A DNA stretch of 64,000 nt from Mizuhopecten yessoensis (lineage: Eukaryota), in NCBI RefSeq assembly GCF_002113885.1, contig NW_018405300.1:413913-477912 (forward strand), in the 5' to 3' direction. The position numbers were made by a program, and so were the translations under genes. The notes under the pieces were generated by a model, which worked only from the letters and a program-made list of their open reading frames with translations, was not told where the DNA came from and searched no databases. Below, in pieces: positions 31,401-58,000 of this stretch (position 1 is its first letter; the number at the start of each line of letters is the position of its first letter).

Positions 31401-34400
31401 TCACATTAATGACCAAGCATGTGAAACAGATTGAGCATGACAAGTCATTACAGGTAGGGACATGACAAGTCATTACAGGTAGGGACATGACAAGTCATTA
31501 CAGGTATGAACATGACAAGTCATTACAGGTAGGGACATGACAAGTCATTACAGGTAGGAACATGACAAGTCATTACAGGTAGGGACATGACAAGTCATTA
31601 CAGGTAGGGACATGACAAGTCATTACAGGTAGGAACATGACAAGTCATTACAGGTAGGGACATGACAAGTCATTATAGGTAGGGACATGACAAGTCATTA
31701 CAGGTAGGGACATGACTAGTCATTACAGGTAGGGACATGACAAGTCATTACAGGTTGGTACATGAGAAGTCACTACAGGTAGGGACATGACAAGTCATTA
31801 CAAGTAAGAACATGACAAGTCACTACAGGTAGGGACATGACAAGTCATTACAAGTAAGAACATGACAAGTCATTACAGGTAGGGACATGACAGATCTCTA
31901 TAAGTAAGTAACAGGAGAAGTATTTACTGGAAGGAACATGAAATTAAAGGTCAAAATAGGTTAGAATGTGACAAGACTCTAGAGGCAAAAAAGCATGACT
32001 GCACCTTTCCTTCAATGACTCATTGGTGATGCTAGGGGCTAACAAGTTGGTCTTAACTACTGCTGAAATAGAAAGGGAAGTGCATAAAACCCCTTAATTT
32101 TATCAATTTAAAATTTAAAAGTATTCCTTCTTTTAAAATAAATACTGAGTAAATGTTTACATAAAATGAACTGTGCCACTACTCTAAAGATATAGCTGTA
32201 GCTATCATGGTTATGGCAAACCTAGGGGACAAAGACATCCACTTTTCTGTTAAATGTAGAAATATTCTTATTTTGTAAGACTGTTTGGGATGAGAACATA
32301 TATTATGATATGCAGAAAATGAATGTGTGGTGTAATGTTTTCAGTTTTTACCTAGACTATTGACCTACTTGTTACTACTATTTTAGATGAATGACCTGAT
32401 GGATACTATAGACAAACAAGAAGAACTACTACGCCGATCTAAAAGGTAAAATGTCAAAAATGATAATGTTATAGAAGCATTTTGCTCAGTGGTACCAAGT
32501 GAACTATTTATGTTAATGAGGTGACTTGATCAAGTGCAAGTTAACTATTTATGTTAATGAGGTGATTCGATCAAGTGTACACTTGCTATTGAAGTGACTT
32601 AAACAAGTTTACTATTTATGTTATTGAGGTGATTCATGCTAATGAGGTGACTGAAACAAAAGAAACAAGCTTGATGAGTAGACATGAACAAGGTTACTTT
32701 TGATATTAAAATTTTAAAGGAATCTGTGTTTTAAGTGTTTGATCGGTCTAAATATTGACTTGATTTTGTTTAACAGGTCTTCTTCTGATAAAATCACTAA
32801 TCTACACGAAGCACTAGAAGAGAGGAAAGCTTCTTTTAACTCTGTTGCTTCCAAGTAAGTAATAAGATATACTATACTTACACTTATATACTGGAATAAG
32901 CTAAATAAAACGGATCAAAATGCTGCAAAAAACAAGAGTAATAACTCTTTCAAAAATTACTGAATTTAACTTAAGAATGTGAAAGCACAACTACATGTCA
33001 CGCTAATAAATCATGCCTACTTATGTTGAATCCTGTCGTATGATGTGTGACATTGCCATTTATGCTGAATAGTGTTCCTTGTTATGTCTCCCCTTCGAAT
33101 GAAGGGAGATATATTGTATTAGTACTAGTTCTTCTTCTTCTGGTTCTTCTAATCGCATCTTGTCCAGGCCATAACTTTTAAACCGTTAAAGACATCTTGA
33201 TCAAACTTGAACTATACCTGCATCACCCACAGAAGATGTGCAATGCACTAGAATCGGGTCGTGTGCCCCCACTATATACAGAGTTATTGCCCTTTGTTTA
33301 TTTTTAATAACGAAGATTGTCCGTAGCATAAGTTCAATGTTATTTCACCTACGTTGACCAAACTTACCATATTTATGTATCTTGGGAAGGCAGAATCTGT
33401 CACACTAAAATCAGGTCTTGGCCTCACTTGGCCCTTTGTTTATTTTTTATATCGAAGTTTGTCAACGGTATACATTTTTAACCGTTAAAGATATCTTGAT
33501 CAAACTTGAAGTATACCTGTAACACCCACAGAAAGTGTTGGTGCACTGAAATTAGGTCTGGTGCCCCACTATATACAGAGTTATGGGCCTTTGTTCTTAA
33601 ACAAATTGTTCAAACAATATGAACCAGAATAATTTAAAAGTTGAATGGTTTTAAAGTTTACACACCTTAATCTTGATGTGACCTTTCTATTCTTCCAAAA
33701 AAAGTTCTAGTTGTTCAACATTTTACATTTTCTAATATTAGTACCATTAGGATGGAGGGTAAATTTACAGGTTAAAGATAATTTGCAATAAAGTTCGTTA
33801 TAAAATGATTTTTCATGTAACTAGTTGTAATATAAATAAATAAATAAATATAGAACGTTTGATATAGCACCCTATCTAGCTAGAATAAGCAACTCTCAGG
33901 CGCTTTACAGTACATATATATACAATTTATACAATCAATACAACTTATATATACATTAATCAATACAAGTTGAGGATTTTGCAGGAGCTGCCTTATCAGG
34001 CGCTAACTATTAGTCCTATGCCACCTGGCTAATATCTCCCTATGTGTGTATGCCTGGGGGTTTGCTGGAGATGTATAGTTATGTGCACTATTTACGTGTA
34101 ATTAAAGACGGTATTTAAAAGTGAAAGCAGATCTCTATTTGTTTTTTTGTGACAAATATCCAATCAGGAGGTGCTGAACATCAGTGTAGGGGGCTCACAG
34201 TCTCATTTGTGGTCTAGCCGAGGTAAAATTGCTGGGGTTTCTGTCCGTCCGTCCGTCTGCACTTAGGTTAAGAAGAATGGTTTAGGTCCGTTTCCAAATT
34301 ATTAATTATCCCACATCAACTAAACTTGGCTTATGTATCTAAGGATGCTTATCAAATGTGATGCATTGGATGCTTCTGAGCTACATTTTCTGCTTCAGTG

Positions 34401-37400
34401 ACCAGGTTAAGAAGTTTGGTTAAGGTCAGTTACTAAGTAACTACTTGTCCTACATCAACTAAACTTGCATTGCTTTTGTATCTAAGGATGTTTATCACAT
34501 GCGATGCTTTGGATGCTGGTTCTGACCTACATTTTCAGCTTCAGTGACCAGGTTAATAAGATTGGTTAAGGTCAGTTAACTACTTGTGGTACATCACATG
34601 TGATGCTTTATGTACTGTAGGAATCGGGCCATATCGCCATTGGTGGTTTCTTGTTTAAGTATTTTATTTTACTAATTGATTTACGCTTGAAAGTATCAAA
34701 TTTATCATAGGCTGATTTTCACTGTCTATGAAACACCTCCATTGTCAGAAAGTTGTCTTATAAACTAGGTACAATGTCTCATTGTGTCTGTATCACGCTC
34801 TGTTGAATCCAGACTTGCCATGACAGAGTCGGAGCTTGCCCTCACAGAGCAGAAATGTAATGATTACTCCATGCTCATGAACAAACTAAAACAGGAGTTG
34901 TCGGAGAAGATGGGCGGGCACCAGGAGGATCTACGCAGATACCAGGAGGTGAGCTGGAGTTCCTCCTGTAAAATTCTGATATCTGATACTTTTCATAAGT
35001 CACGAAAGTTGAATTGTTTTTGTGAAATGGCATTTTTTCTGCACATTTGTAAAAGTTGTACTTTCATTGAAAACTTTGTAATGCAACTGTTTATCAGGAC
35101 TTGAAGTGTAACAGCATAGGAAGTTAATTGGTTTTAATGTTTTCTGTTTTCTTATGATGTGAGATCGGTATGAAAAAAACAACCAGAGCTAAAATTAGGA
35201 ACAGATACAAAAAGTGATTCTTGTATTTGAGTTCAATGTCTCCCCTTTGAGTACAGGAATACACATTGTATTAGCAATGGTTTTGCTGGTTCAGGGTTTC
35301 AAAAAGTCTTGTCTGAGCCAATTGTTGTTATACAATTAAATACTTCTTGATGAAAGTTTAAACGTACCAGCATTACACACAGAAAGTGTGCAGTCTATAT
35401 TGTAGTAAGGTTAATCTGGCAGATCAAGGCCTGGGGCCACATAGTAATTTTAACAAAATTTGTTGTGGCCATAAGTTTTGGACCATTAAAGATATTTTGA
35501 TGAAATTTGAAATGTACCAACATCATACAGAGGTGTGTAGTATACTGTAAATATGTCATTCTTGGCTTCATTTCAGCATCAGTAGTCAAACAGTTCTTAA
35601 TTTTTAATCAAGTTTATCTGGTCCACCCATTTTAAACAATGAACATTACAATATTTGGATGTAACATACATTTTAAACAATACATTTTAATTGTTTTAGG
35701 ATCGTTCTGTAACAGAGGCTAAACTATACAAGGAGGTGTCAGTGGCACACGACAAGAACATCCAGCTAGAGACCAAGGTATGTATACATTTATAGGGACT
35801 TGTATCTCATCAGTTTACTCGAAAAACAAGTCATGATTTACACAGGAAATAGAAATACAATTAATATGCTTGTTCAGAGAGTGAGATTGTTTCCATATAT
35901 AAAGAATATCCCATGTTTTTTTCTTTTCTTCCCAGTTGGAGGATGCAGAAAGGAAATGTCGGCTACAGCAGGACCAAATCTTTGAGCTGAAGGAACAGAT
36001 CACACACTTAACAGCTGAACTCAAACTTAAAGGGACACATTTTGATGGTAACTATACGAAAACAAAGTAAATATTTTCAGACACATCAAGTTGATTTCTA
36101 TTTTGTTCAGATTACTTGTTCTAAATTAATTTATTTTGATAAATAAATGAGCTCAGGTTTGAAGACAAAGTAATTGTTCATAGAAGCAGTAGGCATTTCC
36201 TCAACTCTGAGTGGTTTTTATGTACCATATTTGGTAAATCTAGACAAGAGGCCCAAGGGCCTTAGTGGTCACCTGAGTACTGGTAGCTTTATTTTATGGT
36301 TTAGATGTGATGTGGAAATCAGCATGTAAACTAAGTGAAATGCGATACTTGTCATGTAATCAAAGGATAATGATTTTAAAATATTGGTGAATGTTCCCTT
36401 TCCCTTTGGAGCCCCGCCCTAGCCCCTGGGGATGGGGTAGGAATTCCAATTTTACAATTTAATACCTTCATCCACCAAAGATGATTTTGACTAAGTTTGA
36501 ATAATTTTCTGCTGAAAATGGATAAAATATACCCAAAAGTGTTGTTTCCCTATATAAACTATAGTAAACTTTACCCCCTCCCCAAGGGAGAACGGATAGC
36601 TCGGGGGTCCTGAAATTTACAATTTAAATAAAGCCCCTATGATCTTTCCATCCATGCTGAGAAAATGACTGTTATTCCTCTGAGTCAGGAGAAGAAGATT
36701 TTTGAAATATTGGTTAATTTTCCCTTTGGGGCCCCACCTTGGCCCCTAGGGTTGGGGTAGGAATCCTAATTTTACAATTTAAAACCCTCATCCACCAAAG
36801 ATGATTCTGACTAAGTTTGAATACTTTCCTACAGAAAATTGTCAAAATATACTCAAAAGTGTTGTTTCCCAATATAAACTATAGTAAACTTTACCCCCTC
36901 CCCAAGGGAGAACGGATAGCTCGGGGGTCCTGAAATTTACAATTTAAATAAAGCCCCTGATGATCTTTCTATCCATGCAGAGAAAATGACTAGTACCTCT
37001 GAGTCAGGAGAAGAAGATTTTTGAAATATTGGTTAATTTTTCCTTTGGGGCCCTGCCTTGGCCCCAGGGGTTGGTGTAGGAATCCCAATTTTACAATTTT
37101 GAAGCCTCATCTACCAAAGAATGATTCTGACCAAGTTTGAAAAAATTCCATCCACTGGTTCTTGAGAAGAAGTTGAAAATGTAAATATTTATGCACGACG
37201 GTCGACGAAGGACGGAAAGTGATCAGAAAAAGTCACTTGAGCAAAGCTCCGGTGACCTAAAAATACTGTTTGATATCATGAATTATAAACATCAAAGTGA
37301 CAAATACCTTGAAATATCTTACAGAACGACTCCAACAAGAGCGAATAAGACATAAGGATGACTTGAGGGACGCAGAGCAGATCAGACAGAAAGAGGTACC

Positions 37401-39822
37401 AAACACTTATCATAGATGTGTGACTGGCCAGCATGGTTTAAGGTCTGCAGAACCAGCATGGGGGAGTACATAGTGTACTACTAGCATCCTAGCTTCTTGG
37501 AGGAATTTTCTTAAGATAAAAACTGGTTCCATGTGTCTCTAGAGGCTCAGTCTTTGCAGTTACTTTTTTCTCAATTACAGGCGATAGACCAAACGCATTG
37601 ATTATTAATGGTTAATTTTCCCGAGTTGAACATTTCATTAAAATATTCAGATTTCATCATAGATTTTGATTTATGTTTTGTTTCCATAACATTGAATAAA
37701 GATGTGTAGGTATATATGTCAGTACTAAAGTAGAAGATGTTTCCTTGTACAGGTGGCACGAGTTAGACAGGATGCCGAGGAGACGGAGAGTGCCATGCGT
37801 GAGAGGATTCAGAAGCTGGAGATGACAAGACTAGCCTTAGAGGAGGAGATCAGTAAACACAAAAACGCAAACATAAACAACAAACTTCACCACGAGGAAC
37901 AGCTCAGTCTCGCCAAACAGAAACTCCTATCTGAGGAGGTAATATATCCTCATCTAATCATATAAACACACACCATTGCTCAAAAGTATGCTGTACAAAT
38001 AGGTATAATCCAATACACATTTGAAATGGGATTATAATGAAGAGTGGGAGTGCTTATTGTCACAAATTAAAAGAACATCGATATTACTCCTGGTCATCTT
38101 TTGATATCACGGATAAGTGGCCAATTGTTGAATGTTCCTAAAAAACAATAATGTATGCCTGTATGAATATAAAACTGAACAAGATTAATTCAAGCTATAT
38201 ATCATGGGGTTCTTATTATAGCTCAAGTCAGATTGTCTTCAGGAAGGGATACTCTGTATGAAATAAACTGTTATCGAAAGCTTGTATTGACATATTCTGT
38301 GATTGTAGGAACTGCGTCAGCAACATGTGGGGGAGAAGCTGAAGCTTGAGATGCACTTGAAGGATGAGCTGCAGTCTCGGTGTAACCAGCAGTCATCTGT
38401 GGTGTCAGAGCTACAGTCCAAAAACAGCTCACTCACCATGGAACTCGAACTGATGAAAAGGCGGGTCGAAGAGCTCCACCAGGTCAGCCAGTACATATTA
38501 TTGTATCGTCACTTAGGGACTTCCAAGTCCTAAATATGAGTGTCCTGAAGGCAATTTTCTCACTAATTAAATCAAGATCAATGAAACTTCACTGTATGTA
38601 CATACACATTATATACCTATAAACATACACTGTTCTTCTGCATACACAATTACACACCCGTGTCTCCTACACTATTAACATGCAGTGCTCCATTTTGTAC
38701 ACTGTAACATTATATAACTGAATAAGAAATGTATCTCATTCCCTAGCTGGTACCCTCCCCCTTCTCATGGATCTCTAACATTGTACAGCAAAGGAAGAGA
38801 TTATAATTACAGTCAAGTTGAAATCATGATAATAATGTTAACAATGAGAAGCTGAAGATAATTAGAAGTGATTTGTTCACCAATCCACAGGAGCTATCAG
38901 AGAAGAACAGTATGACTCTGTCTGAGGTTGGCAAGGTGAAGATTGACCTGAATCAGACACTCACAAAGCTTGACGGGGAGAGGAAAATACAAGCTGAACT
39001 TAGGGAACAGCTTGGGGAGGCTGACAGAAAGATGTCTGGTAGGTGTAACTATGCTGGTCAAATATGTCTCCAGAAAGCCACACCAAGAATATGTAGTATA
39101 TAGATTGAAAACAATATTGTTTTGGTCCTAGATATACATGCAAGGTTGAAGAAAGAACAGAAATCAATCAAACTAGTCTGGTTATTTTCATGCTAGTCAG
39201 AATTTCGACGAGACATATTGTGGTGCGGGAAATAAGGCCTATAAACTAATTAATTCATGATTGATTTAATTCGGAATATTTGAGTGTAGAAATGATGGAG
39301 TTTTTAATAAAGATACTTCATGATTTCAAGTCTATCTCCTTGCTAGACACTAACAAGAGGTAAACAACCGAAATATCCTGATATTTATTTCCAGCTGTTG
39401 TGTTGCTATTGTTGCCAACTTGCTTTTAATTTCAATCCTGGCTGCCTATGACTAGGATTTACAGATATCATTGTTTGAAGGAAGGTAGTTTATACATGGT
39501 TTTGTTTTATATTTACCTACGTGACTTGCAACAACAGCATTCATGATATATTTGTTAAAACTATTATTAAATGATCATCGGTTAGTCAATAAAAAAATGA
39601 GTATTCAGATTCCTGATTTAACTATTTACTACTATATTTCCAGAACAACTTCTCAGACATCGACAATTACTAGAGGACAAAGATTTAGAGACAGAAGATT
39701 TGAAAAGGCGATTAAAATCGAGGGAGGCAGAACTTAATGGTATAAGAGAGGAGGAGGGCCAACGAGCACAGGTGTTACAAAATGCTATAATGAACTATGT
39801 CAACAAAGTACCTGCTCACTGA
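28499..39822 (+). CDS. LRRC45: Leucine-rich repeat-containing protein 45 (centrosome linker / distal appendage protein), 668 aa, 17 coding exons
   Basis: Exons 28499-28584, 28991-29136, 29312-29373, 29914-29984, 30282-30460, 30897-31025, 31341-31453, 32387-32445, 32777-32854, 34813-34948, 35700-35777, 35936-36047, 37325-37395, 37753-37938, 38309-38482, 38891-39038 and 39644-39822 (2007 nt, phases consistent). MEGFKHVFMRLCKE..EPQD, LEWNALG, DLRWNNVGLLGGRALL..LAGNNIP match LRRC45, followed by a long coiled coil. Confidence 0.93.
31436..31892 (+). repeat. 25-bp tandem array (x~18) made of the LRRC45 exon 7 donor junction
   Basis: Unit catgacaagtcattacag|gtaggga = last 18 nt of the exon + first 7 nt of the intron. 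Confidence 0.95.
33080..33620 (+). mobile_element. Decayed HINE-like element with ~300-bp internal duplication
   Basis: Head ttatgtctccccttcgaatgaagggagatatattg with a (ttc)n microsatellite. aaccgttaaagacatcttgatcaaacttgaa..gtgcccccactatata is repeated at ~33180 and ~33480. Confidence 0.55.
34225..34655 (+). mobile_element. Short HINE-like element
   Basis: (gtcc)n microsatellite, ~140-bp internal repeats (ggttaagaag..ggttaaggtc), and 3' hairpin ccattggtgg plus cttgttt end. Confidence 0.55.
36244..37262 (-). mobile_element. HINE on minus strand with ~303-bp internal tandem core
   Basis: acaagaggcccaagggcct..ggtcacctgag at left and ccggtgacctaaaa at right. Core cctcatccaccaaagatgattctgactaagtttga is repeated at ~36470, 36790 and 37105. 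Confidence 0.75.
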
Positions 39823-41457
39823 TTGGTTCTCACTCCAGTAAACACTACATTGTCAAAGAGATCTTTTAAATTCAACTCTGTGAACTAGAAAGTAGGCCCC
39901 TACCGACAGAATGTTTCAGTGACCAGTTAGAAGATATCTTACTTAACATGCTATCTATGGCTTCAGTACATTCCTGGTAGATAGATTAGAACAATGGGCC
40001 ACCACATACAGATTAACTGCACTGTATCATCACCTCACAAATGATGGAAATTTGAATCGCTGATGTATGGATAATACTTTGGTAACAAGTTGCTTTTCAT
40101 CATAAAATACTCATGTGATGTATGTATTGAAAGAATTATAAGGTGCTTTCTTATCTAATTCGGGAAAAAATACTACACCTCTGTTGAACAGAATGACTTT
40201 TTGTTCTGTCATGAGGTCAAATGAATAAGAGACAGAAATGAACTTGATCCTGTATGACTGCTAAGTAACAACAAAACAACGAAGTAATGTATTTATATGA
40301 ATGTGTAGGTGTTGTGCTGCATGTGAATATCTTGACCGTCCATGTGTAGTTCTGTCTGGGACAGCTGTGATATATATATATATTGAATTATTATGATTGT
40401 TGAGTAATGATTAGAGAGAGCTTACCTGTTTGTATTTAATGATACAGTGTCCTTAGTCAGAGTAGTGATATTTATACAATTTGTACAAACTTCATATTTC
40501 TACTATACATTCATAACTCCTTATCATTCTTGAACATTTCCCCAGTACTTCTATACAGAATAACTTTCTACACACCAGCACACAGCATTTATACAGGGCT
40601 TATTATAAATATTGTTTGATATACAGTACAAGTAAGCTTTAATGTTTCTTAATGCATACTTCATCATGAACCTTGTCATGTATTTTCTCTAGTAGGTGAT
40701 TCTATAATTTATTCCAATATTTGATTAAAAACATTATATGCAATGTACATTTATGACAGTTCATACAACATGCTTCTCTGCATTTATTTTCACTGTGAAT
40801 GTTTTTAACTACCTGTTAAAATTCTAGAGTAGTAAATATTAATATTGTGATTTATTTTTGTTAAAATGTTGTACATTTTGAGGACTTTGTTATACATTGA
40901 TGTAGTTATATCTAGTGTGATAAGTATATGATACATACATGCAGAAATGCAGGTGCACACACAAAATTTTCATGTAAATTCCAATTGTGTCATATACTTC
41001 TTGTAGTATCCATGAATTATCAAATCAGGTTCTGTGTAACTGAAAAGGTTTGTTGTGTATAACCATTCGTAGAAATTAAACCCAACAAACTTTGTTTAGC
41101 TTACAACAAATTTATTTCCATAAGTTTTCCGCGAAAGTTTGTACCACAACACAATCTAAATAGCTTCAAACCACTTAAAAATACTGTTACTCACTAGCAT
41201 TGCACGTGGTACGGTAACGTTTTCTATACTTTGTCCAGTAGTTTTACACACCTGTTAGCTTTTTTTCTCACCAACTGCCAACTAAGTAGGAATGATATAC
41301 TAGAATTGTAACACGAAACGTATCAACTTCACCTTACATTGTTCAACATTACTTTTAACTTTCGTTCATGCAGGAAACAAAAGAGGTAAATGACAATACT
41401 ACAGCTTTGGTTAGTGGTATACTTGTGATGTAAATAAAGATTCCGCAATGAGTGATA

Positions 41458-41590
41458 AGTTGTTTATTGTATTTATATAATTCAAGTTATTTAATTTTCA
41501 AATTTCAAAAAGACACGAGGTTTACCCAGTGTCTTTTTGAAATTTTAATGTTAAATAATTTAGGTTATATAGACATTATAACAACTGTAA
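41458..41590. repeat. ~130-bp imperfect palindrome between the convergent LRRC45 and SGSH 3' ends
   Basis: aaatttcaaaaagacac gaggtttaccca gtgtctttttgaaattt core with extended AT-rich arms. Confidence 0.75.
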
Positions 41591-42487
41591 TAGGTTATGG
41601 AATTTCTTTTCTACCATAACCAATCAACATTAGTTTATTTATTCATTTTTTAAGGTCATGAGGTCAAAATACTAGGAAACATGTTCTGTAATAGCCACTG
41701 AAACTGCTCAATATGTTGACACATGTGCTTACAAAAAATCAATAGTTACACTTCGTAACACAATGGCCTAAGCATGATATACGTCTTAGGTTATGGTAGA
41801 ATTCAGAAATACTATGTGTTTATCTAACATCACAGATAAACAAGTTAATTGTCAGAATACATCCAGGAGTGTGTGTAGGTCTAGAGTGGATGTGTCTGCA
41901 CTATACACAAGTCCTGACATCAGATACGATGTGTGGTATTACTTTTATTACGTATTAAAATTTGTAGATTATAACTGTTGATCCTCCTGGAATAACGTGA
42001 CGTTTGATTCCCATCACTATAACCATAAGTGATAACGACTGCAAATAATGTCAATAATGGTTTCTAAATACAGTGTATAATGGGGAAAACATCTTTATTA
42101 CATTCATGTTCTGTTACACATGCTGGAAATGATATTTTCATGGGATGGAATATTCATAATACTGGTAAAGTTATAATGTAAATGGATTTGAACTTTGACA
42201 ATTCGTAATGCACAGAGAGGTATGAAAGTGTTCAAATAAAACAAGGTTGATTGTCAGTGTCTTGCGTATGTTTACATTTTACTTGTATATTTAGTTTTAG
42301 TTTAAAATGATTAAGTAGGTAAGCTTCTTGAATATATTTGTAAATTATATATAAAATGTATAAATATGTACATAAACATTGATACATATAAGCAGGTGTC
42401 CATTTGTATGTAAAATGTATAAAAATGTACATAAAATTTTGGTAAAACTATGACAATTGTGTTATAATTTTGGCACTGAAATGTACT

Positions 42488-43040
42488 AGATCTGTAGGTA
42501 AAATAATGTCTACAGTAACAGATTCCAGATCTGTAGTTAAAATAATGTCTACAGTTGCAAACAGATTCCAGATCTGTAGTTAAAATAATGTCTACAATAA
42601 CAGAGTCCAGATCTGTAGGTAAAATAATATCTACAGTAGCAAACAGATTCCAGATCTGTAGTTAAAATAATGTCTACAGTAACAGATTCCAGATCTGTAG
42701 TTAAAATCATGGCTACAGTAACGAACAGATTCCAGATCTGTAGTTAAAATAATGTCTACAGTAACAGAGTCCAGATCTGTAGTTAAAATAATGTCTACAG
42801 TAGCAAACAGAGTCCAGATCTGTAGTTAAAATAATGTCTACAGTAGCAAACAGATTCCAGATCTGTAGTTAAAATAATATCTACTCTAGCGGACAAATGC
42901 AAGATCTGGAGTTGAAATAATATCGACAGTAGCTGAGACCAAATCTGTAGGTAAAATGATATCAATAGTACCAGTCTGAGTCCAGATCTGAAGGAAATAT
43001 AATGTTTGTTGTAACAGATTCCAGATCTGTAGGTAAAACA
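42488..43040. repeat. 39/43-bp tandem array (x~13) immediately 3' of the SGSH stop codon
   Basis: Unit cagattccagatctgtagttaaaataatgtctacagta(gca)a; degenerates toward the stop codon. Confidence 0.9.
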
Positions 43041-43068: not shown

Positions 43069-46000
43069 TCATAGTCCGTTGTACATACTATAACACTGTG
43101 GGTGATACTTATGTGGCCCTACATCCTGCAAAACACCCGAGGGTGAACAAATCCAGGGGTCAAAGGTTATATTCTGCCACATATTCAATTGGTTCTGCAG
43201 CTGATGATAAACCTTTGAGTGACTTGGATCACGAGCTAAATTGTGGAGTTCCTGTGGGTCAGTAACTATGTTGAAGAGTTCCCACTGGTCCCTGTAGTAG
43301 TAGTTGTGGAGAGTTTTGTACCAGTGTGTTTCCTTTCCCTGCTGTGTTCTGTTCAGCAGATCTTGGAATGTCCTTGAAACAAAAAAATCCTGATCTATCA
43401 TGAATGGCATTTGAAAGTTAATATTTTGAATGAGCTTGTATTGTTTGTTTCTTACCACCCTCATAGGGTAGTACATTGTCACCTCGTGGAGGCTGTGACT
43501 GGCATATACAGTATCCCAAGATTCCTTTGGTTCCTCCTTAAGCAAAGGGAGTAAAGACTTGCCGGTCAAGGTCACAGCATTTTTGAGGATCTTGTAGTGA
43601 GGATATTTGACACCAAACCAGTCCAGTACTGTAGGGAGAATGTCCACATGGCTCAACATAGCATCACTTTTCTGAAATTTCAAAGGTATTCTTAAACACC
43701 AGTACTGCCTTCCCAATATTCTAAATCACCAGTACTGCCTTCCCAATATTCTAATCACCAGTACTGCCTTCCCAATATTCTTAAACACCAGTACTGCCTT
43801 CCCAATATTCTAAAACACCAGTACTGCCTTCCCAATATTCTAAAACACCAGTACTGCCTTCCCAATATTCTAAAACACCAGTACTGCCTTCCCAATATTC
43901 TAAATCACCAGTACTGCCTTCCCAATATTCTAAATCACCAGTACTGCCTTCCCAATATTCTAAATCACCAGTACTGCCTTCCCAATATTCTAAATCACCA
44001 GTACTGCCTTCCCAATATTCTAAATCACCAGTACTGCCTTCCCAATATTCTAAATCACCAGTACTGCCTTCCCAATATTCTAAATCACCAGTACTGCCTT
44101 CCCAATATTCTTATCACCAGTACTGCCTTCCCAATATTCTAAAACACCAGTACTGCCTTCCCAATATTCTAAAACACCAGTACTACCTTCCCAATATTCT
44201 AAAACACCAGTACTGCCTTCCCAATGTTCTAAAATACCAGTACTGCCTTCCCAAGACACATGTATGTATTACAAGTTTAGTGAATACAGCTGAAGTAGCA
44301 ACAAAGTTATGCTGTCGAAAATCTTTGGCATAAAAATAAACAAAGGGCCATAACTCTGTATGGGACGAGCACAAGACCAAAATTCAGCATGTGACATTTC
44401 ACCTTCTCAACCTACATAATTATAGAAAGTTCAGTGAATGTAGGCGAAAGAACAAAGAAGTAATGTTAAAGACAAACTTTGTTAAAAGACAAACTTTGGT
44501 GTAAAAAACAGAACAAAGGGCAATAACTGCATATGATGGGACAGGAGACCTGATTTTGGTATGCATAACTCTGTCTTACCACAACACATAAGTAGAGCAA
44601 GTTCAGTGAATATGGGTGTAATAGCAAGGAAAAAAATAGCTTTTTGTTTTTAAACAAACCATTTTCCTCAGGTTGAAATTATATTTATCCACCATTACAA
44701 TTGGGAAAATACAGTTCAAATTTATATTTCAGGGAAAAAGCCTGCATTACGTCATAAGTACTACAAAATCACTATTCAGGAATATTTTTTGTGCCACTTG
44801 AATGTTGAAGAGGAATATTGTGAAAGCAACCAAGGATATGAACGACAGAACTTTATCTGTTATTATACTGGATTAAATTTGCCAAGACTCCCCATTTTAT
44901 GTTTCCGTGTCATTACTTTCTGTTATCATATTTGTTTATAAATAAAATAATTTAAATGACAATCTCAACCTGGTAAAACTTTATGTGTTCATGAGAAATA
45001 TTTAGTTCATTAATACTACCCACCTGTCCCAAGCGCTTCCTATGGTATGGTGAGGACATAATGAATGGTTCAGCCAAACCTGAGTCATACAAATTGGTGC
45101 GGCCATTGGGGAAAGGTATGCCATTGTCGGAGGAGTACATGACGAGAGTGTCATCTGCATGGCCTGCCAACTCTAGCTCCTTCAGTATAAGACCTATACC
45201 TTGAGGCACAAAAAAGATACAATGATGTTTATGCTCCAGGGAAGATACATCGTTTACTACAATGCTCTCTTCATGGCCTGCTGCCTCTACGTCGTTCAGT
45301 ACAACTTTCTCTCACAAAGCACTGTAAACCACTTTATTTTTATGAGGACTTTAATTTGCAAACTAAGCCTGTAGCTTTTATCTGCAAATGCTTGAATTTT
45401 TGATTGGGATGAAGCTATCATAATATTGATATTACTTATCTATAGAACTAATATGTGTTGAATATTTAAATCAAAAGAGTTGTATTGCCATTTTGATGCA
45501 AAAATAATCTCTCATAGAAAAAAGTGATTCATAGTATGTGTGTAGGAGAGCAAGTAATTTGTTAGATTGTTGTCTACAAATCCTGCTCTTATTAATTCAG
45601 TACTAGGCCTGGACATTTCAGTATAAAGTGACTTAGCATTAAATGTTTAGAAGGTTAACAGTGTGATGAAAACAAATTTCTGAAGTCTCTTTTTGTCATA
45701 TTTGAAGATGTAAAGACATACAAATCTGATGAGAATTTTCAAATAAAACTTTAAAATCAAAGAGGACCTTGATCTGAACGTCTCTCAATTCTTCTAAACC
45801 CTAACTGGGACGTCGGTTAGATAGAGATTTCCCATTGAGTAATGACTGGTTATCATGTTTATCTAACTTGAGATAGTTAATTTTCAAATTGTATGAAGAC
45901 ATGAGGTTTATAAAGAGTCTTTTACAATTTGAGAATTAACTTACACGTTTCTGTTGGAAAATACACTTAGATGAATTTGCAAAGAACTGTTGCACGACGT

Positions 46001-49000
46001 TATAATGAAAAGATTGACCAATGAAATGATGTACAGGGTGTCACCCACTAGTAGGTAACCAAAAATGTTTACAAACTACTAGCCGGTTTATTCAATGAGT
46101 CATTAGTGAGCTGTGGGTAAATTTTTTGATACTTTAGAGCACAAAGTCTATCTTGCTTAACATGCCGAATTAATGCTGTGCGTACCCCACATTGTATACA
46201 TATGGTATGCATGGAGTCCTAATAAATTCTGCTCAAGGCTGTATACAAAGACATAAGAATCCTAATAGTTTACCTTGGTCCATACGGTTTATGGTGGTGT
46301 ACTGGGCAGCAATGTCCAGTCTGGCAGCAGGAGTGTCCTGGACAAAATAGGGAACAACCACAGATGCAGGATCAAAAAAGACTGGATTCCAATCAGGCAT
46401 GGTCCCATCAGCACCGAACTTCTCACAGAACTGTCCGTACTGGGGATGGGTGTGACCACATCGATGGGGGTCGTGGAATGCCACATACAGAAAGAAAGGA
46501 CTGGAATATAGATTAGAAAATACAGCAAACTAAATGCGATGAAATTCAATAATGTAGAGGTGGAGCTGGGTTGGTGGGTGGAGGTGGGAGAGGGAACTGA
46601 TTTTGTGGGTGGAGGTGGGAGAGGGATCTGATTTTGTGGATGGAGGTGGGAGAGGGAACTGATTTTGTAGGTGGAGGGGGGAGAGGGGACTGATTTTGTG
46701 GGTGGAGGTGGGGGAGGGAACTGATTTTGTGGGTGGGGGTGGGAGAGGGAACTGATTTTGTGGGTGAAGGTGGGAGTGGGAACTGATTTTGTGGGTGGAG
46801 GAGGGAGAGGGAACTGATTTTGTCGGTGGAGGTGGGAGAGGGAACTGATTTTGTAGGTGGGGGTGGGAGAGGGAACTGATTTTGTGGGTGAAGGGGGGAG
46901 GGGGAACTGATTTTGTGGGTGGAGGTGGGAGAGGGAACTGGTTTTGTGGGTGGAGGTGGGGGAGGGAACTGATTTTGTAGGTGGAGGTGGGAGAGGGAAC
47001 TGATTTTGTGGGTGGAGGTTGGGAATGGGACTGACTTTGTGGGTGGAGGTTGGGAATGGGACTGACTTCGTGGGAGGGCCTGGGGGTGGAACTGGCACAG
47101 TGGGTGAAGGTGGGAGATGGAACTTGCTTAGTGGGTGGAGGTGGGAGATGGGACTGATTTTGTGGGTGGAGATGGGGGATGGGTTTGGCCTGGTGGGAGG
47201 GGCTGTGGGACAGAAGTGGCTTGGTCAGTATGGGTAGGGGATGGGGGGAGATTTTTGGGACTGGTTTGGTGGGTGCAAAGTTACGTTTGAACTAGTGGAG
47301 TTTTCTAATTGTTTTTCTAACTTCAATATTAACAAAATATTTCAATGTCCATGTATATGCTTTAATTGGGCACATAATATAAACGAAGCTCATTTCCATT
47401 CTATCGCACTATTGTGAAACTAATGCTTGTTTTGCAAAAATCATATCTAATAGAATCTTGTTTGACATCCTCTATATGGTGCAAAAGTGGTAAATAGTGT
47501 GATAACATTTAGAGTGCAAAAGTTGTAATTACAAAATGAGACACATTTTAAACTATACCAGTTACTGGTATATTAATATATCCTGCCTAACATCCTTCAA
47601 CTGAAGGCATATAGATTGTTGTTGTGTGCGGTCACATGTTTTAACAATACATGTGATCTATATCAATGGACACACAAATTGTATTACACCATAAATTTTA
47701 CCATTAATTTATGGTGACACCAGTTTCTTTAATTATCTCCCTTGATATATCACCAAACAGCCAAAATGTGAATTAATAAATTGATAACTTTACATTTGGT
47801 GGTCATGTGGGGAAGCTCTCACCTGGAAGAATTTTGACGCAGAAACTCACGCACATGTTGACGAATGAAGGTGATGTTTCTTCCTGTTTGCAGAATACTG
47901 TGGCCATCAAGTTCAGTTACGGAATAATCAAATGGGTATACTGACTCAGGACCCAGATTCTTCTTACCAATTATACCTGGTAAAGGGTAACAAAGTGAAG
48001 TTAAACATATAAAGCTAATAACCTTCTTAAAGTTTAAACATGCAAGTGGCCTCCATACCTCACCCCAACAACCTGTCAACCAGTATTCACACCTGTCCAG
48101 TCTCTGCTCCTTGTTTTACCTGTCCCGACCCTCTCTCCTGTTCTACCTGTTCTGACCCCTCTCTCCTGTCTAACCTGTTCCGACCCTCTCTCCTGTCTTA
48201 CCTGTTCCGACCCTCTCTCCTGTCTTACCTGTCCTGACCCTCTCTCCTGTCTAACCTGTTCCGACCCTCTCTCCTGTCTTACCTGTTCCGACCCTCTCTC
48301 CTGTCTTACCTGTCCTGACCCTCTCTTCTGTCTAACCTGTACTGACCCTCTCTTCTGTCTTACCTGTCCTGGCCCTCTCTTCTGTCTTACCTGTCCTGAC
48401 CCTCTCTTCTGTCTTACCTGTCCTGACCCTCTCTCCTGTCTTACCTCTCCTCACTCGCTCTTCTGTCTAACCTGCCCCAATCCTCTCTTCTGTCTAACCT
48501 GTCCTGACCCTCTCTCCTGTCTTACCTGTCCCCACCCTCTCTTCCGTCTAACCTGACCTGACTCTCTCTCCTGTCTAACCTGTCCTGACCCTCGCTTCTG
48601 TCTTACCTGTCCTGACCCTCTCTTCTGTCTAACCTGTCCTGACCCTCTCTCCTGTCTAACCTGTCCTGACCCTCTCTCCTGGCTAACCTGTCCTGACCCT
48701 CTCTCCTGTCTAACCTGTCCTGACCCTCGCTTCTGTCTTACCTGTCCTGACCCTCGCTTCTGTCTTACCTGTCCTGACCCTCTCTTCTGTCTTACCTGTC
48801 CTGACCCTCTCTTCTGTCTTACCTGTTTTGACCCTCTCTCTTGTCTTACCTGTTCGGACACCTGCCCCTTTTAATAGTGATGGCAGGCTTCTGACGTCCT
48901 CAAACGACTGAAAGTGGTGGTAGCCATTGAACAGCCCGTACATTCCATTCTGGTGCTGTGGTAATCCTGACAACACCACTGACCTGTAAACATTTTCCCA

Positions 49001-52000
49001 TTATCAACTGTATTTTATAAAACAAGTACACTCCCCTACCCCAGTATGTTATTTATTGTTAATTAGATTTATTGTTTACCTAATATTTCTTAATAATGAA
49101 GTCATCTAGTGCTGATTCTTCCATCTATCGCCCTATTATGGAATGCTGATAAAAATCAAGAAATGTTTTTTTGGCAATATGTTAAATGCTTACAGGTATA
49201 TTAGAAAGCTGTCCTACATCCTACATCACTATTTACAATATACCTAGAATATGCTTTTCTCATATGTCTATCATATCATAAAAATGTATGTTACAAATCT
49301 AGAGAATGTTGATTGAATGACTTACATTGGAAATTGATATGTGCATGTCAATACTGATTTCAGATCCAATAACAAAACAATAACAGGTTTTTCACTTGCT
49401 CAGTATGCTTCCATATTTTCCATCTACTGCTTTAATTATATATGTATACCTGCTTGGTGAACAACTGCTGACAGATGTAAAAGCGTTGTTAAAAACCAAA
49501 CTCCTCTCTGCTAACTTGTTCAGGTTTGGTGTCTTACATATTTCATTGTTGTACACCTGTGTCTCAAATCCAGCATCATCCCCTAAAAAAGAAATATACA
49601 AATCTAGGGGATGATCCTGGATTTGTATAATTCTGTTTAAGAGGATGAAAATCCATCATCATCCCCTGTACAGATTTATACAAATCCAGCATCATCCCCT
49701 AAACCAGATTTATACGAATTCAGCATCATCCCCTGTACAGATTATACAAATCCAGCATCATCCCCTGTACAGATTTATACAAATCCGGCATCATCCCCTG
49801 TACAGATTTATACAAATCAATCATCATGCCCTGTACAGATTTATACAAATCCAGCATCATCCCCCGGTCAAATTTATACAAATCCAGCATCATCCCCTGT
49901 AAAGATTTATACAAATCCAGCATCATCCCCTAAACCAGATTTATACGAATTCAGGATCATCCCCTGTACAGATTATACAAATCCAGCATCATCCCCTGTA
50001 CAGCTTTATACAAATCCAGCATCATCCCCTGTACAAATTTATACAAATCCAGCATCATCCCCTGTAAAGATTTATACAAATCCAGCATCATCCCCTAAAC
50101 CAGATTTATACAAATCTATCATCATCCCCTGTACAGATTTATACAAATCTATCATCATCCCCTTTACAGATTTATACAAATCCAGCATCATCCCCTAAAC
50201 CAGATTTATATGAATTCAGCATCATCCCCTGTACAGATTATACAAATACAGCATCATCCCCTGTACAGATTTATACAAATCTATCATCATCCCCTGTACA
50301 GATTTATACAAATCTATCATCATCCCCTAAAACAGATTTATACAAATCTATCATCATCCCCTTTACAGATTTATACAAATCCAGCATCATCCCCCGGTCA
50401 AATTTATACAAATCCAGCATCATCCCCTGTAAAGATTTATACAAATCCAGCATCATCCCCTAAACCAGATTTATACAAATCTATCATCATCCCCTGTACA
50501 GATTTATACAAATCAATCATCATTCCCTGTACAGATTTATACAAATCCAGCATCATCCTCTAAACCAGATTTATACAAATCCAGCATCATCCCCTGCACA
50601 GATTTATACAAATCCAGCATCATCCCCTGTACAGATTGATACCAATCAATCATCATCCCCTAAAACAGATTTATACAAATGCAGCATCATCCCCTGTACA
50701 GATTTATACAAATCAATCATCATTCCCTGTACAGATTTATACAAATCCAGCATCATCCCCTGTACAGCTTTATACAAATCCAGCATCATCCCCTGTACAA
50801 ATTTATACAAATCCAGCATCATCCCCTGTACAGAATGATACCAATCAATCATCATCCCCTAAAACAGATTTATACAAATCCGGCATCATCCCCTGTACAG
50901 ATTTATACAAATCTATCATCATCCCCTGTACAGATTTATACAAATCTATCATCATCCCCTAAACCAGATTTATACAAATCTAGCATCATCCCCTAAAACA
51001 GATTTATACAAATCCAGCATCATCCCCTGTACTGATTGATGCAAATCCAGCATCATCTCCTGTACAGATTTATACAAATCCAGCATCATACCCTAAAACA
51101 GATTTATACAAATCTATCATCATCCCCTGTACAGATTTATACAAATCCAGCATCATCCCCTGTACAGATTTATACAAATCCAGCATCATCCCCTGTACAG
51201 ATTTATACAAATCCATCATCATCCCCTGTACAGATTTATACAAATCCAGCATCATCCCCTGTACAGATTTATACAAATCCAGCATCATCCCCTGTACAGA
51301 TTTATACAAATCCAGCATCATCCCCTGTACAGATTTATACAAATCCAGCATCATCCCCTGTACAGATTTATACAAATCCAGCATCATCCCCTGTACAGAT
51401 TTATACAAATCCAGCATCATCCCCTGTACAGATTTATACAAATCCAGCATCATCCCCTGTACAGATTTATACAAATCCAGCATCATCCCCTGTACAGATT
51501 TATACAAATCCAGCATCATCCCCTGTACAGATTTATACAAATCCAGCATCATCCCCTGTACAGATTTATACAAATCCAGCATCATCCCCTGTACAGATTT
51601 ATACAAATCCAGCATCATCCCCTGTACAGATTTATACAAATCCAGCATCATCCCCTGTACAGATTTATACAAATCCAGCATCATCCCCTGTACAGATTTA
51701 TACAAATCCAGCATCATCCCCTGTACAGATTTATACAAATCCAGCATCATCCCCTGTACAGATTTATACAAATCCAGCATCATCCCCTGTACAGATTTAT
51801 ACAAATCCAGCATCATCCCCTGTACAGATTTATACAAATCCAGCATCATCCCCTGTACAGATTTATACAAATCCAGCATCATCCCCTGTACAGATTTATA
51901 CAAATCCAGCATCATCCCCTGTACAGATTTATACAAATCCAGCATCATCCCCTGTACAGATTTATACAAATCCAGCATCATCCCCTGTACAGATTTATAC

Positions 52001-55000
52001 AAATCCAGCATCATCCCCTGTACAGATTTATACAAATCCAGCATCATCCCCTGTACAGATTTATACAAATCCAGCATCATCCCCTGTACAGATTTATACA
52101 AATCCAGCATCATCCCCTGTACAGATTTATACAAATCCAGCATCATCCCCTGTACAGATTTATACAAATCCAGCATCATCCCCTGTACAGATTTATACAA
52201 ATCCAGCATCATCCCCTGTACAGATTTATACAAATCCAGCATCATCCCCTGTACAGATTTATACAAATCCAGCATCATCCCCTGTACAGATTTATACAAA
52301 TCCAGCATCATCCCCTGTACAGATTTATACAAATCCAGCATCATCCCCTGTACAGATTTATACAAATCCAGCATCATCCCCTGTACAGATTTATACAAAT
52401 CCAGCATCATCCCCTGTACAGATTTATACAAATCCAGCATCATCCCCTGTACAGATTTATACAAATCCAGCATCATCCCCTGTACAGATTTATACAAATC
52501 CAGCATCATCCCCTGTACAGATTTATACAAATCCAGCATCATCCCCTGTACAGATTTATACAAATCCAGCATCATCCCCTGTACAGATTTATACAAATCC
52601 AGCATCATCCCCTGTACAGATTTATACAAATCCAGCATCATCCCCTGTACAGATTTATACAAATCCAGCATCATCCCCTGTACAGATTTATACAAATCCA
52701 GCATCATCCCCTGTACAGATTTATACAAATCCAGCATCATCCCCTGTACAGATTTATACAAATCCAGCATCATCCCCTGTACAGATTTATACAAATCCAG
52801 CATCATCCCCTGTACAGATTTATACAAATCCAGCATCATCCCCTGTACAGATTTATACAAATCCAGCATCATCCCCTGTACAGATTTATACAAATCCAGC
52901 ATCATCCCCTGTACAGATTTATACAAATCCAGCATCATCCCCTGTACAGATTTATACAAATCCAGCATCATCCCCTGTACAGATTTATACAAATCCAGCA
53001 TCATCCCCTGTACAGATTTATACAAATCCAGCATCATCCCCTGTACAGATTTATACAAATCCAGCATCATCCCCTGTACAGATTTATACAAATCCAGCAT
53101 CATCCCCTGTACAGATTTATACAAATCCAGCATCATCCCCTGTACAGATTTATACAAATCCAGCATCATCCCCTGTACAGATTTATACAAATCCAGCATC
53201 ATCCCCTGTACAGATTTATACAAATCCAGCATCATCCCCTGTACAGATTTATACAAATCCAGCATCATCCCCTGTACAGATTTATACAAATCCAGCATCA
53301 TCCCCTGTACAGATTTATACAAATCCAGCATCATCCCCTGTACAGATTTATACAAATCCAGCATCATCCCCTGTACAGATTTATACAAATCCAGCATCAT
53401 CCCCTGTACAGATTTATACAAATCCAGCATCATCCCCTGTACAGATTTATACAAATCCAGCATCATCCCCTGTACAGATTTATACAAATCCAGCATCATC
53501 CCCTGTACAGATTTATACAAATCCAGCATCATCCCCTGTACAGATTTATACAAATCCAGCATCATCCCCTGTACAGATTTATACAAATCCAGCATCATCC
53601 CCTGTACAGATTTATACAAATCCAGCATCATCCCCTGTACAGATTTATACAAATCCAGCATCATCCCCTGTACAGATTTATACAAATCCAGCATCATCCC
53701 CTGTACAGATTTATACAAATCCAGCATCATCCCCTGTACAGATTTATACAAATCCAGCATCATCCCCTGTACAGATTTATACAAATCCAGCATCATCCCC
53801 TGTACAGATTTATACAAATCCAGCATCATCCCCTGTACAGATTTATACAAATCCAGCATCATCCCCTGTACAGATTTATACAAATCCAGCATCATCCCCT
53901 GTACAGATTTATACAAATCCAGCATCATCCCCTGTACAGATTTATACAAATCCAGCATCATCCCCTGTACAGATTTATACAAATCCAGCATCATCCCCTG
54001 TACAGATTTATACAAATCCAGCATCATCCCCTGTACAGATTTATACAAATCCAGCATCATCCCCTGTACAGATTTATACAAATCCAGCATCATCCCCTGT
54101 ACAGATTTATACAAATCCAGCATCATCCCCTGTACAGATTTATACAAATCCAGCATCATCCCCTGTACAGATTTATACAAATCCAGCATCATCCCCTGTA
54201 CAGATTTATACAAATCTATCATCATCCCCTGTACAGATTTATACAAATCCATCATCATCCCCTAAAACAGATTCNNNNNNNNNNNNNNNNNNNNNNNNNN
54301 NNNNNNNNNNNNNNNNNNNNNNNNNNNNNNNNNNNNNNNNNNNNNNNNNNNNNNNNNNNNNNNNNNNNNNNAACAGATTTATACAAATCTATCATCATCC
54401 CCTGTACAGATTTATACAATTCATCAGCATCCCCTGTACAGATTTATACAAATCCAGCATCATTCCCTGTACAGCTTTATACAAATCTATCATCATCTCC
54501 TGTACAGATTTATACAAATCCAGCATCATTCCCTGTACAGATTTATACAAATCCAGCATCATCCCCTGTACAGATTTATACAAATCTATCATCATCCCCT
54601 GTACAGATTTATACAAATCCAGCATTATCCCCTAAAACAGATTTATACAAATGCAGCATCATCCTTCAAAACAGATTTATACAAATCCAGCATCATCTCC
54701 TGTACAGATTGATACAAATCCAGCATCATCTCCTGTACAGATTTATACAAATCCAGCATCATACCCTAAAACAGATTTATACGAATCCAGCATCATCCCC
54801 TGTACAGATTTATACAAATCCAGCATCATACCCTGTACAAATTTATACAAATCCAGCATCATCCCCTGTACAGATTTATACAAATACTGCATCATCCCCT
54901 AAACCAGATTTATACAAATCTATCATCATCCCCTGTACAGATTTATACAAATCTATCATCATCCCCTAAAACAGATTTATACAAATGCAGCATCATCCCC

Positions 55001-58000
55001 TGTACAGAATTATATACAGTTTTCATTCACTTATACCACATCATCTACATTGCAAATTGGAAAAAAACAATGCTAGCATAACCATACTTATTATATAGTA
55101 CGTCACATTATAAACTGAACCTCGAAAAAAGTACTTCACTGGGGGGAAAATGTTGTTGAAATCTGTCTTGTTGAAGCCTCGTACAAAGAGGTGAAACTAG
55201 TCGGCCAATAAAGATATGTACCAACTTACTGGTGACATTTGAGCATGTTGTGAATTATTCTTCCTGTTAAAAATCATGTAAATGTTTGATGTACATTGTC
55301 CCTTGATGAGCCCTCGATTTGGTCAATAAAATCTCGTATCTTTTACCTTTAATTGTACCTAAAATTGAAAGTAAATTCCCAGCAGGCACACAATGTTTAT
55401 TCAACGTTATGCTGGATTGTTATTTGGTTGTGACGTTGATAAACGCTATTTTTTCAACGTTGAAATGTTGTTGTAATATGACTTTTAAACAACGTTGATT
55501 AATTGGATTTTTTTCAACCTTATTGACATTGTTGAATCTCAGCATTGAATCAACATTGATTCAACGACCTGTTTTCAATTGTTAATGATATCTTGTATTT
55601 CATATTTGGTTATTTTATATAGAAACATCACGATTATCATTGTCATTGGTTAAAAAAAATTGAAAGTATCGGAACTTTGCACGCATTATCTACTGGGGGA
55701 TTTAAAATCACTATGTTGAATGTTTATTTCATAGGGAGTTTAATTTAACTTATTACTCTTACATGTACCTTATAATGTTACATGATTTACAATTTTGTGA
55801 TTTATTTCATGTCTGCCTATGTGGACTAATTAGCTCCCTTGCTCTATGTGATTCGCCGCCTGGTGGAACTATTGTTGCTTATGCATCATTTACTCTATAT
55901 ATATCTTTTTGAAAACATAAGCCATCGCGGGCCATACAAAATTGGAAGTAGAACATAAACCCATATAAACCTAACATGCAACTGCAGATGATTGCAATGA
56001 AGCGCTGCATTACAGTAAAAGGTACCGGTAAGTGAAATAGGATGTCTTGATTATTCAATTATGTGATATAGAAGTGCATGTGTTCTATCTGTAAGAATAT
56101 ATTAATGTAAGATGATCTCCCGATCCCGGACTTTCAGAGTTTAAAGTAATTTCAAATGTGATGCAAATTTAAAACCTGAAGGTCCCGACATTGAAAGGCT
56201 GATTCACACTTGCATAACCAATATGAATCAGCATTTAAATGCAGTTTAAGGATGTACACCTCTGAGAAGTCAAAAAATTCCTGTATTAAACTTTTTTTCT
56301 TATATTGATTTTTGGAAAAAGGAGAGAATGGCATAGTAAAAAATGCAAAAACATATATATGTCTGTGTGTTCATTTTTGTACTATGATCGGTCAAAGATA
56401 CCAATTTAACACAATAGGTGCATGATTTTAGGTGAATTTTCGGGTTTTGACCATTTGCAGAACAAATTCATACAATTTCTTCCAAGTGTGTTATCAGATA
56501 TGTATGAATGTTTGTAGAATTGATAAAAATATTATTTTCTTTAAAAATATAGAAGTAAAATTACTCAATCTTATTCATTTTACTCCGAAATGCGATTTTA
56601 GTTACCCCTACCCCTTATTTTTTAATGAAAAATGCACTTTTTTTCACCATTTTTTGCAGATTAAACGCTTGATATAAAAAAATCCTGTATTAACTTTTTT
56701 TGGTATTCAATGAATCAAAAGAAAATGTGTTTCTCTTTCTAAAACCGCCACAAAAATGGGGGGTCGGTGTGCTTCTTTTTTTGTCCCATTATTATTTGTG
56801 TTATTTTTCACCTTTTTCAGTGTCAAAAATCAAAAGTGCTTCAGTTACCCTAATATGTAAAAAAAATACCAATAATATATAACTTTCCACTTTTTTGCAT
56901 ATTATTTTAATCATATTGAACATTATAAAGTTGTACAACAAAATTGAACCTGCTACATTTAAAAATGGTGACACAATGACAATTTAAGTGATTAACATAG
57001 TGTCAAATAAGGTGAAATTTTACCCTTTGTGAAGCGCAAGAAATTCACATACCAGTAAATACACTTTTTCAAAATGGCTGCCAAATTGGTCATTTTTTTC
57101 AAATTTTAGTAAAAAAAAATGTACACACAACAGACATCTAGTTTTTTGACATGTTTTTCAGATGTGTGTTTGCTATTAAACCTATCATAATTTGATAAAT
57201 AGTACAAAAACCCATTACACCAGATCAAAACGAGACTTGAACATGACTGAAACCTCAGAAGAGTACATCCTTAATATGTCATATATTTGAAGCACAATGT
57301 GTATAAAGTTGCTAAGGCAAACGGAGAGTGAAACTCCTTTGCACATGTGTATAAAAACTCGCTGTTATCTCTGCAATCCTAAACTGGGTCGTGCAACTGT
57401 TAGCAAGATACACGTCAGTGTGTAGCAACTGTTAGCAAGATACACGTCAGTGTGTAGCAACTGTTAGCAAGATACACGTCAGTGTGTAGCAACTGTTAGC
57501 AAGATACACGTCAGTGTGTAGCAACTGTTAGCAAGATACACGTCAGTGTGTAGCAACTGTTAGCAAGATACACGTCAGTGTGTAGCAACTGTTAGCAAGA
57601 TACACGTCAGTGTGTAGCAACTGTTAGCAAGATACACGTCAGTGTGTAGCAACTGTTAGCAAGATACACGTCAGTGTGTAGCAACTGTTAGCAAGATACA
57701 CGTCAGTGTGTAGCAACTGTTAGCAAGATACACGTCAGTGTGTAGCAACTGTTAGCAAGATACACGTCAGTGTGTAGCAACTGTTAGCAAGATACACGTC
57801 AGTGTGTAGTAACTGTTAGTAAGATACACGTCAGTGTGTAGCAACTGCGTTTGCAACCACGTGTTTAAATGCACACAAAGAAGACCTAGTCTTGGTCACT
57901 TTCTTTCCGTGTTCTTATTTATGAAAGACCTTATAGAAAGGAGTTGGAGGTACCTCTATAAGGTCATTTTATTGCTATAATATTTTTCTTATTAATGTAT

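Follow-up and report, generated by a model that had tools for sequence, protein, structure and literature searches.

The 64,000-nucleotide stretch of the Mizuhopecten yessoensis genome analysed here (the window; contig NW_018405300.1, positions 413,913 to 477,912) contains two intact genes in tail-to-tail arrangement, LRRC45 on the plus strand and SGSH on the minus strand, and three of their introns carry tandem arrays whose repeat units are copies of exon-intron boundaries. LRRC45 (28489-39822) has 17 coding exons specifying 668 aa and SGSH (59041-43069) has 7 exons specifying 505 aa; each forms a single open frame with canonical splice sites, i.e., GT-AG at every intron. Exon-by-exon searches returned the Pfam matches Sulfatase, SGSH_C and LRR_6, and SGSH exons 2-7 of the window are identical to M. 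yessoensis SGSH at 470 of 470 positions and 90-94% identical to those of Argopecten, Ylistrum and Pecten. All database searches were made exon by exon or with orthologue proteins, and joined exons served only for counting stops. The two genes are also tail-to-tail neighbours in oyster, other bivalves and amphioxus as well as in scallops, an old microsynteny. The original prediction, made from the window sequence, held that units of 25, 27 and 33 bp straddle the LRRC45 exon 7 donor, the SGSH exon 3 donor and the SGSH exon 2 acceptor, and this is confirmed by the reading frames and, at both SGSH sites, by RNA.

Array A (31436-31892, plus strand) consists of 18 copies of a 25-bp unit made of 18 exon and 7 intron nucleotides. 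Its exon part is the final 18 nt of LRRC45 coding exon 7 (31341-31453, plus strand; 18/18 identical), and copy 1 holds the genuine donor (31453/31454), while all other donor copies, here called decoys, would read into a stop. This donor was assigned from the open frame and from Pecten maximus, where exon and donor are orthologous; RNA reads were placed at SGSH only. Array B (48102-48853, or 48866 at its widest, minus strand) comprises about 28 copies of 27 bp derived from the donor (48850/48849) of SGSH exon 3 (48850-48983, minus strand; gene model and RNA). Measured against the unit consensus, the junction copy has drifted in its exon part (8/11) and stands at 15/16 in its intron part. A unit with merely 11 exon nucleotides was replaced, once orthologues were compared, by an ancestral unit of about 28 bp with about 17 exon and about 11 intron nucleotides. 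Blocks of variant copies occur within array B, its consensus is species-specific among scallops, and its decoys 2-6 are in frame, free of stops and equal in strength to the real donor.

Array C (49649-55014, minus strand) holds about 160 copies of a 33-bp unit (with 34- and 32-bp variants) derived from the acceptor (49583/49582) of SGSH exon 2 (49450-49582, minus strand; RNA), which encodes the catalytic CSPSR motif, completed by the next base of exon 3. The unit has 17 exon nucleotides (17/17 identical) and 16 intron nucleotides, and 95 core copies are identical, with variant copies toward the edges. To reach exon 2, the coding part of exon 1 (58951-59041, minus strand; gene model and RNA) is joined across about 140 acceptor-like sites. 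The genuine junction copy of the unit (49566-49599, minus strand) is superior to the decoys in its pyrimidine tract (8.0 bits for the real acceptor, decoy median 5.2 bits), and all scored decoys lead to a stop. The array has no direct contact with exon 2, as an inverted copy of about 1.6 units (about 53 nt; 49597-49649, plus strand) stands between it and the genuine acceptor, in a pattern resembling the outcome of a template switch; the original prediction makes no mention of it. Through this inverted copy the majority of decoys are shifted out of frame, and it may have isolated the real site from homogenisation. It is predicted to fold either on decoys (z -8.4) or over the acceptor and exon start (z -5.7), as any inverted copy would. 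Array C is interrupted by an assembly gap (N run 54275-54371), with the 33-bp unit in equal orientation on either side, and the array is likely continuous across it. The anchor distance over the gap is 140, i.e., 4x33+8, so that the N length is an estimate only, its phase is uninformative, and the total length of the array rests on this estimated run. The junction finding is independent of the gap because the junction copy lies 4.7 kb to its left, with 137 units between.

Both SGSH sites were confirmed by RNA, at low depth, and at both the exon-proximal copy is used. Three joints are supported by one run of raw reads and by three sets of contigs: exon 1 with 49582, exon 2 with exon 3, and 48850 with exon 4. 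The region of RNA placement (48769-49740) lies beside the array bodies and is covered by 13 raw reads, four of them over the exon 3 donor, whereas contigs lose rare forms. At this depth the dominant SGSH mRNA is correctly joined in four runs, and among the reads and contigs of the region none is joined, or ends loosely, at a decoy, a negative of low power. For array B the absence of decoy joints is not an effect of nonsense-mediated decay, because decoys 2-6 keep the frame, contain no stop and match the real donor in strength. Short array fragments are present in contigs of three further samples, so the arrays are not an artefact of the assembly. The NCBI model XP_021350033.1 joins an exon 1 (window 59207-58951, in another frame) straight to 48983 in exon 3, so that neither exon 2 nor the catalytic motif is represented. 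Isoform X2 of Pecten likewise begins in exon 3, though there is no intron 1 array in that species, and the skipping of exon 2 in XP_021350033.1 is for this reason not attributable to array C.

Syntenic loci were compared in Argopecten, Pecten and Ylistrum and in eight more distant animals, LRRC45 being represented by the parts that flank SGSH. All four scallops (Mizuhopecten, Pecten, Ylistrum and Argopecten) carry array B or its homologue in SGSH intron 3 (unit similarity P<=0.003), and the unit lengths of the arrays at this donor are 26, 27, 28 and 32/47. Strong decoy donors number 13 in Mizuhopecten, 14 in Pecten, 2 in Ylistrum and 1 in Argopecten; the drifted array of that genus begins at a distance of 15 nt from the donor and retains that single strong decoy. 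In P. maximus the arrays of intron 3 are layered (locus L004, 11627-12976): a second, young higher-order array of 32/47 bp (96-100% matches) copies the present exon end and lies on top of the old 28-bp array. Array A has a degenerate remnant at the equivalent LRRC45 donor in P. maximus. Array C was not found in the Argopecten, Pecten and Ylistrum loci and belongs, among the four scallops, to M. yessoensis only. The use of orthologous introns to date the expansions, which the original prediction had proposed, thus gives different ages: array B predates the compared scallop genera, and array A, judging from the Pecten remnant, probably does too. Estimates of scallop divergence other than the one cited next may be younger. 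The Pecten-Amusium split alone has been dated to about 130 million years (PMC10225492).

Other junction arrays arose independently, at the LRRC45 exon 13 donor of Argopecten (41 bp, >52 copies), at the SGSH exon 3 and exon 4 donors of Ostrea, and at the SGSH exon 5 donor and exon 6 acceptor of Haliotis. The SGSH exon 3 donor has therefore been seeded three times, by the old scallop array, by the re-seeding in Pecten and independently in Ostrea. In LRRC45 intron 15 of Ostrea edulis (locus L007, 26414-27445) the exon end and its donor were duplicated and an in-frame, exon-internal piece of 45 bp was then amplified 23 times; the amplification sits in the intronic copy, which has a further intact donor at its end, 1,056 nt downstream. 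Related arrays of 41/43 bp end 12 nt (Ylistrum, L005 24682-26260) and 38 nt (Pecten, L004 21386-21535) from the LRRC45 exon 12 acceptor, a site without an array in the window. In Ylistrum LRRC45 intron 9 (L005 27086-28646) a 28-bp array continues past the end of the locus, and its unit may be faintly like the exon 9 donor. Upstream arrays in the Argopecten locus L001 (38 bp) and in Ylistrum L005 (42 and 36 bp) were excluded, as they could not be assigned to exons.

It is conceivable that selection keeps such arrays for a role of the decoys, or of the repeat as such, in regulating splicing or expression, be it as a rheostat, as backup sites, as an in-frame ladder of 9 aa or as a hairpin over the exon 2 acceptor. 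The in-frame, stop-free decoys 2-6 of array B, the persistence of the intron 3 array in four genera, the hairpin at the array C acceptor (z -5.7 to -8.4) and the omission of exon 2 from the NCBI model are in agreement with this, as is the use of the nearest pseudo-sites in human CBS and IFI6 (PMC1557585). On the other hand, decoy strength and unit length, hence reading frame, vary among the array B homologues, array A has decayed in Pecten, and array C is absent from three scallops. RNA shows the first site alone, the decoys of arrays A and C all give stops, the hairpin is automatic for an inverted copy, and the exon 2 peptide is missing from the Pecten model too, though no array is present there. 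We consider a regulatory role unlikely, and the proposal that array length tunes correct splicing finds no support: the first site is used in spite of equal in-frame decoys, even if with little power, and there is no conservation of strong decoys.

Four more arrays of the window, none with an assigned strand, are not exon-derived. Between the end of array D (43687-44254; 19 x 30 bp) and the SGSH exon 7 acceptor there are 15 nt. Array E (46574-47188; about 19 x 31 bp), at a distance of 66-73 nt from the exon 5 acceptor, belongs to SGSH intron 4, and intron 4 of Ylistrum carries its homologue; array E is G-rich on the plus strand, with GGG runs, and quadruplex-prone. Array F (57393-57847; 14 x 32 bp) lies in the middle of SGSH intron 1, 1.1 kb from the donor, and serves as a non-junction control; it is the sixth intronic array and does not figure in the original prediction. 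Array G (42488-43038; 43/82 bp) begins 31 nt past the SGSH stop codon, in the probable 3' untranslated region. An origin from exons was rejected for all four by shuffle comparison with exons, and arrays D, E and G show no significant likeness to the neighbouring exon (shuffle P 0.06-0.96). Three further arrays had been placed about 15-55 bp from SGSH exon ends; this holds for array D but not for array E, which is more distant, nor for array G, which lies inside the last exon after the stop codon and was rejected as an array near an exon end.

An excess of arrays at junctions was evaluated for arrays with a period of 10-100 and at least 3 copies, each collapsed to one unit and placed uniformly, which is a simple null. 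In the window, 3 of the 6 intronic arrays span a junction where 0.4 would be expected (P~0.005, post hoc). The held-out set was made of the orthologues from other species, with homologues of the window arrays removed (n=22 arrays). Four of these 22 overlap a junction (1.3 expected, P~0.03) and nine lie within 25 nt of one (2.4 expected, P~0.0002). The latter are unevenly distributed, with 9/13 arrays in Ostrea, Haliotis and Ylistrum vs 0/9 in Sinanodonta, Dreissena and Mytilus; arrays are lacking from the SGSH/LRRC45 loci of Solemya, Branchiostoma belcheri and Ptychodera. Junction arrays are found at donors in eight cases vs two at acceptors, and the exon share of the units ranges from 4 to 24 nt, which fits random breakpoints. 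A cDNA-mediated (complementary DNA) origin was rejected, as an exon-exon junction occurs in no unit. In scallops, junction and free arrays alike have a G+C content of 0.36-0.56, as compared to 0.32-0.33 for the intron background and 0.43-0.45 for exons. With two genes and a simple null, the junction excess is suggestive, not final. That there is no real excess, i.e., chance overlap in a repeat-dense genome, or that the arrays are products of the assembly, is nevertheless highly improbable. Numbers are small, the window was chosen post hoc, tandem repeats make up 11-22% of scallop genomes and array C contains a gap, but both the window and the held-out probabilities speak against chance. The assembly objection is refuted by the array fragments in RNA contigs, by the presence of homologues in other species, whose assemblies are independent, and by diverged variant copies unlike the product of a collapsed or looping assembler.

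The best explanation, to which we assign a probability of roughly 55%, is that the arrays are neutral DNA-level duplications, tolerated through choice of the exon-proximal site, retained and re-seeded, with a real bias to exon edges. First, a piece of 20-60 bp that spans a splice site by chance would be duplicated at the DNA level through slippage or template switching, of which the inverted insert at array C may be a trace. Second, the spliceosome would pick the site nearest the exon, as it does at both SGSH sites, so that the mRNA is unchanged and the extra copies are intronic by definition; in human F7 the most upstream donor is likewise chosen among identical pseudo-sites (PMC1557585). Third, the doublet could be amplified to the tens or hundreds of copies observed and homogenised, in a genome dominated by tandem repeats, which are the top repeat class in scallops and account for 11.3% and 21.7% of two genomes (PMC5700196, PMC10225492). 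Fourth, as the comparison of the SGSH exon 3 donor among the four scallops shows, an array drifts from the exon, loses its decoys and ends as a merely nearby array, and the conserved exon end can seed anew. The 3-7-fold excess at exon edges would then be due to arrays being retained for long, to re-seeding and to seeds being preferentially richer in G+C, and not to a process directed by splicing; this is the weakest step.

That arrays expand only into the intron, with the functional site at the exon-proximal edge, is correct as anatomy, apart from the inverted copy that parts array C from its exon. As evidence it falls away, since one-sided growth needs only geometry: a duplication that spans the junction, together with use of the exon-proximal site, makes all other copies intronic. 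The choice put forward in the original prediction between mutational targeting and selection against exon-ward expansion is therefore not decided by one-sidedness. Selection purging exonic expansions would give the null rate only, and the excess over the uniform null, found in other molluscs as well, thus needs retention, seed composition or targeted mutation.

Several observations weigh against neutral duplication and retention as the whole account. Retention and G+C bias may not suffice for the excess, and the Ostrea junction arrays are not G+C-rich (0.29-0.48 vs 0.34). For neutral minisatellite DNA, array B has persisted long over the scallop radiation, few reads were available for judging decoy use, and the Ostrea seeding at the equivalent donor together with the lineage split of 9/13 vs 0/9 resembles a lineage-specific mutational bias. 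A mutational process concentrated at exon edges in some lineages is thus a possible, though tentative, alternative. Repair or recombination between highly divergent alleles could start in the conserved exon and switch template where intron homology ends; lesions coupled to transcription or splicing (polymerase pausing, R-loops, a chromatin or methylation boundary) are a second candidate. Such a process would account for the held-out excess in both distance classes, for the threefold seeding of one donor and the further cases at the Argopecten LRRC45 exon 13 and Ostrea LRRC45 exon 15 donors, for the preponderance of donors over acceptors and for the template-switch-like inversion at the array C junction. 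Amphioxus, oysters, scallops and abalone are highly polymorphic broadcast spawners, which also counts in its favour. For C. farreri a polymorphism of 0.81% has been reported (PMC5700196). However, only two genes are involved, at the loci of the discovery itself, the uniform null is simple, aged junction arrays swell the class of nearby arrays, and Mytilus and B. belcheri are polymorphic too, yet have no junction arrays at these loci. It is tempting to speculate more widely that scallops, oysters and abalone share a genome-wide process that preferentially duplicates exon edges, and that junction minisatellites are a major, continually re-seeded component of intron DNA able to last as long as a family has existed; this we regard as possible but less likely than not.

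The window also contains a very long coding exon rich in Asp, Asn and Glu (6511-9958), with 24/48-bp repeats and two gaps, which has the look of an acidic shell-matrix-type protein. Dispersed satellite arrays of 144-160 bp and related ones lie within short mobile elements (24742-28130, 34265-34578, 36399-37149 and 61017-61435); these satellites are present in other scallop loci as well and were left out of the array statistics.

If the excess holds genome-wide, scallops would offer thousands of natural replicates for separating targeted mutation from retention, the choice of the exon-proximal site could be tested against up to 140 decoys, and part of the dominance of tandem repeats in scallops would be explained. 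Should mutation indeed be targeted to exon edges, molluscan genomes would become a system for studying the origin of such repeats and splice choice among hundreds of decoys. In practice, junction arrays complicate work on farmed bivalves, where they confuse gene models, the mapping of reads and exon-primed intron markers.

The original prediction regarded the routine amplification of splice junctions as no standard described feature, and this does not hold, as amphioxus "mirages" and human minisatellites share the anatomy. A molluscan or genome-wide account of junction-derived arrays was not found in the literature searched, whose coverage left out most subscription journals. Mirages are known, gene by gene only, at Adh3, the globins BflGb6 and BflGb9, TnC and PGBD5; they are described as tandem copies of exon-intron boundaries, donors or acceptors, with units of 10-72 bp at Adh3, an origin stated to be unclear, and no effect on normal splicing (Canestro et al. 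2002, cited by PMC3087553 and PMC3902484). In their anatomy the scallop arrays are of this known kind. Their units, within the range of roughly 10-160 bp that marks the kind, combine exon nucleotides, splice dinucleotide and intron nucleotides (18+7 in array A, ~17+11 in B, 17+16 in C), the authentic junction is exon-proximal and the extra copies are intronic (from frame and Pecten orthology in A, and also from RNA in B and C), and arrays B and C show concerted evolution with divergent edges, a feature which mirages, as minisatellite-like boundary copies, share. Compared with the amphioxus mirages, they differ in being molluscan, in reaching about 160 copies, and in their orthology over four genera, their re-seeding and a quantified excess; their scale and age in molluscs are possibly undescribed. 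From the sequence comparisons, the homologues of array B in Pecten, Ylistrum and Argopecten, the donor re-seeded in Pecten and independently in Ostrea, and the measured excess are new. A second likeness is to the tandem duplication of AG/GT-containing segments as a route to intron gain (Rogers model; PMC3087553, PMC2812944), in which AG/GT-like signals also lie in the duplicated segments. The scallop duplications, however, straddle existing introns and make neither a new intron nor a new exon, and intron gain was rejected, as exon lengths and intron positions of SGSH are equal in the four scallops. Human variable number tandem repeats that span a junction are known from F7 IVS7 (37 bp), CBS IVS13, IFI6 intron 2, LMNB2 and PDGF intron 4 (PMC1557585). 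As in the scallop arrays, their first monomer spans the boundary and is followed by identical intronic pseudo-sites, and the most upstream site is used in F7, LMNB2 and PDGF. CBS and IFI6 use the nearest pseudo-sites, which was unseen in scallop SGSH at the available depth. The human cases are scattered single loci, all at donors in that report, whereas in scallops there are several per gene and acceptors are included.

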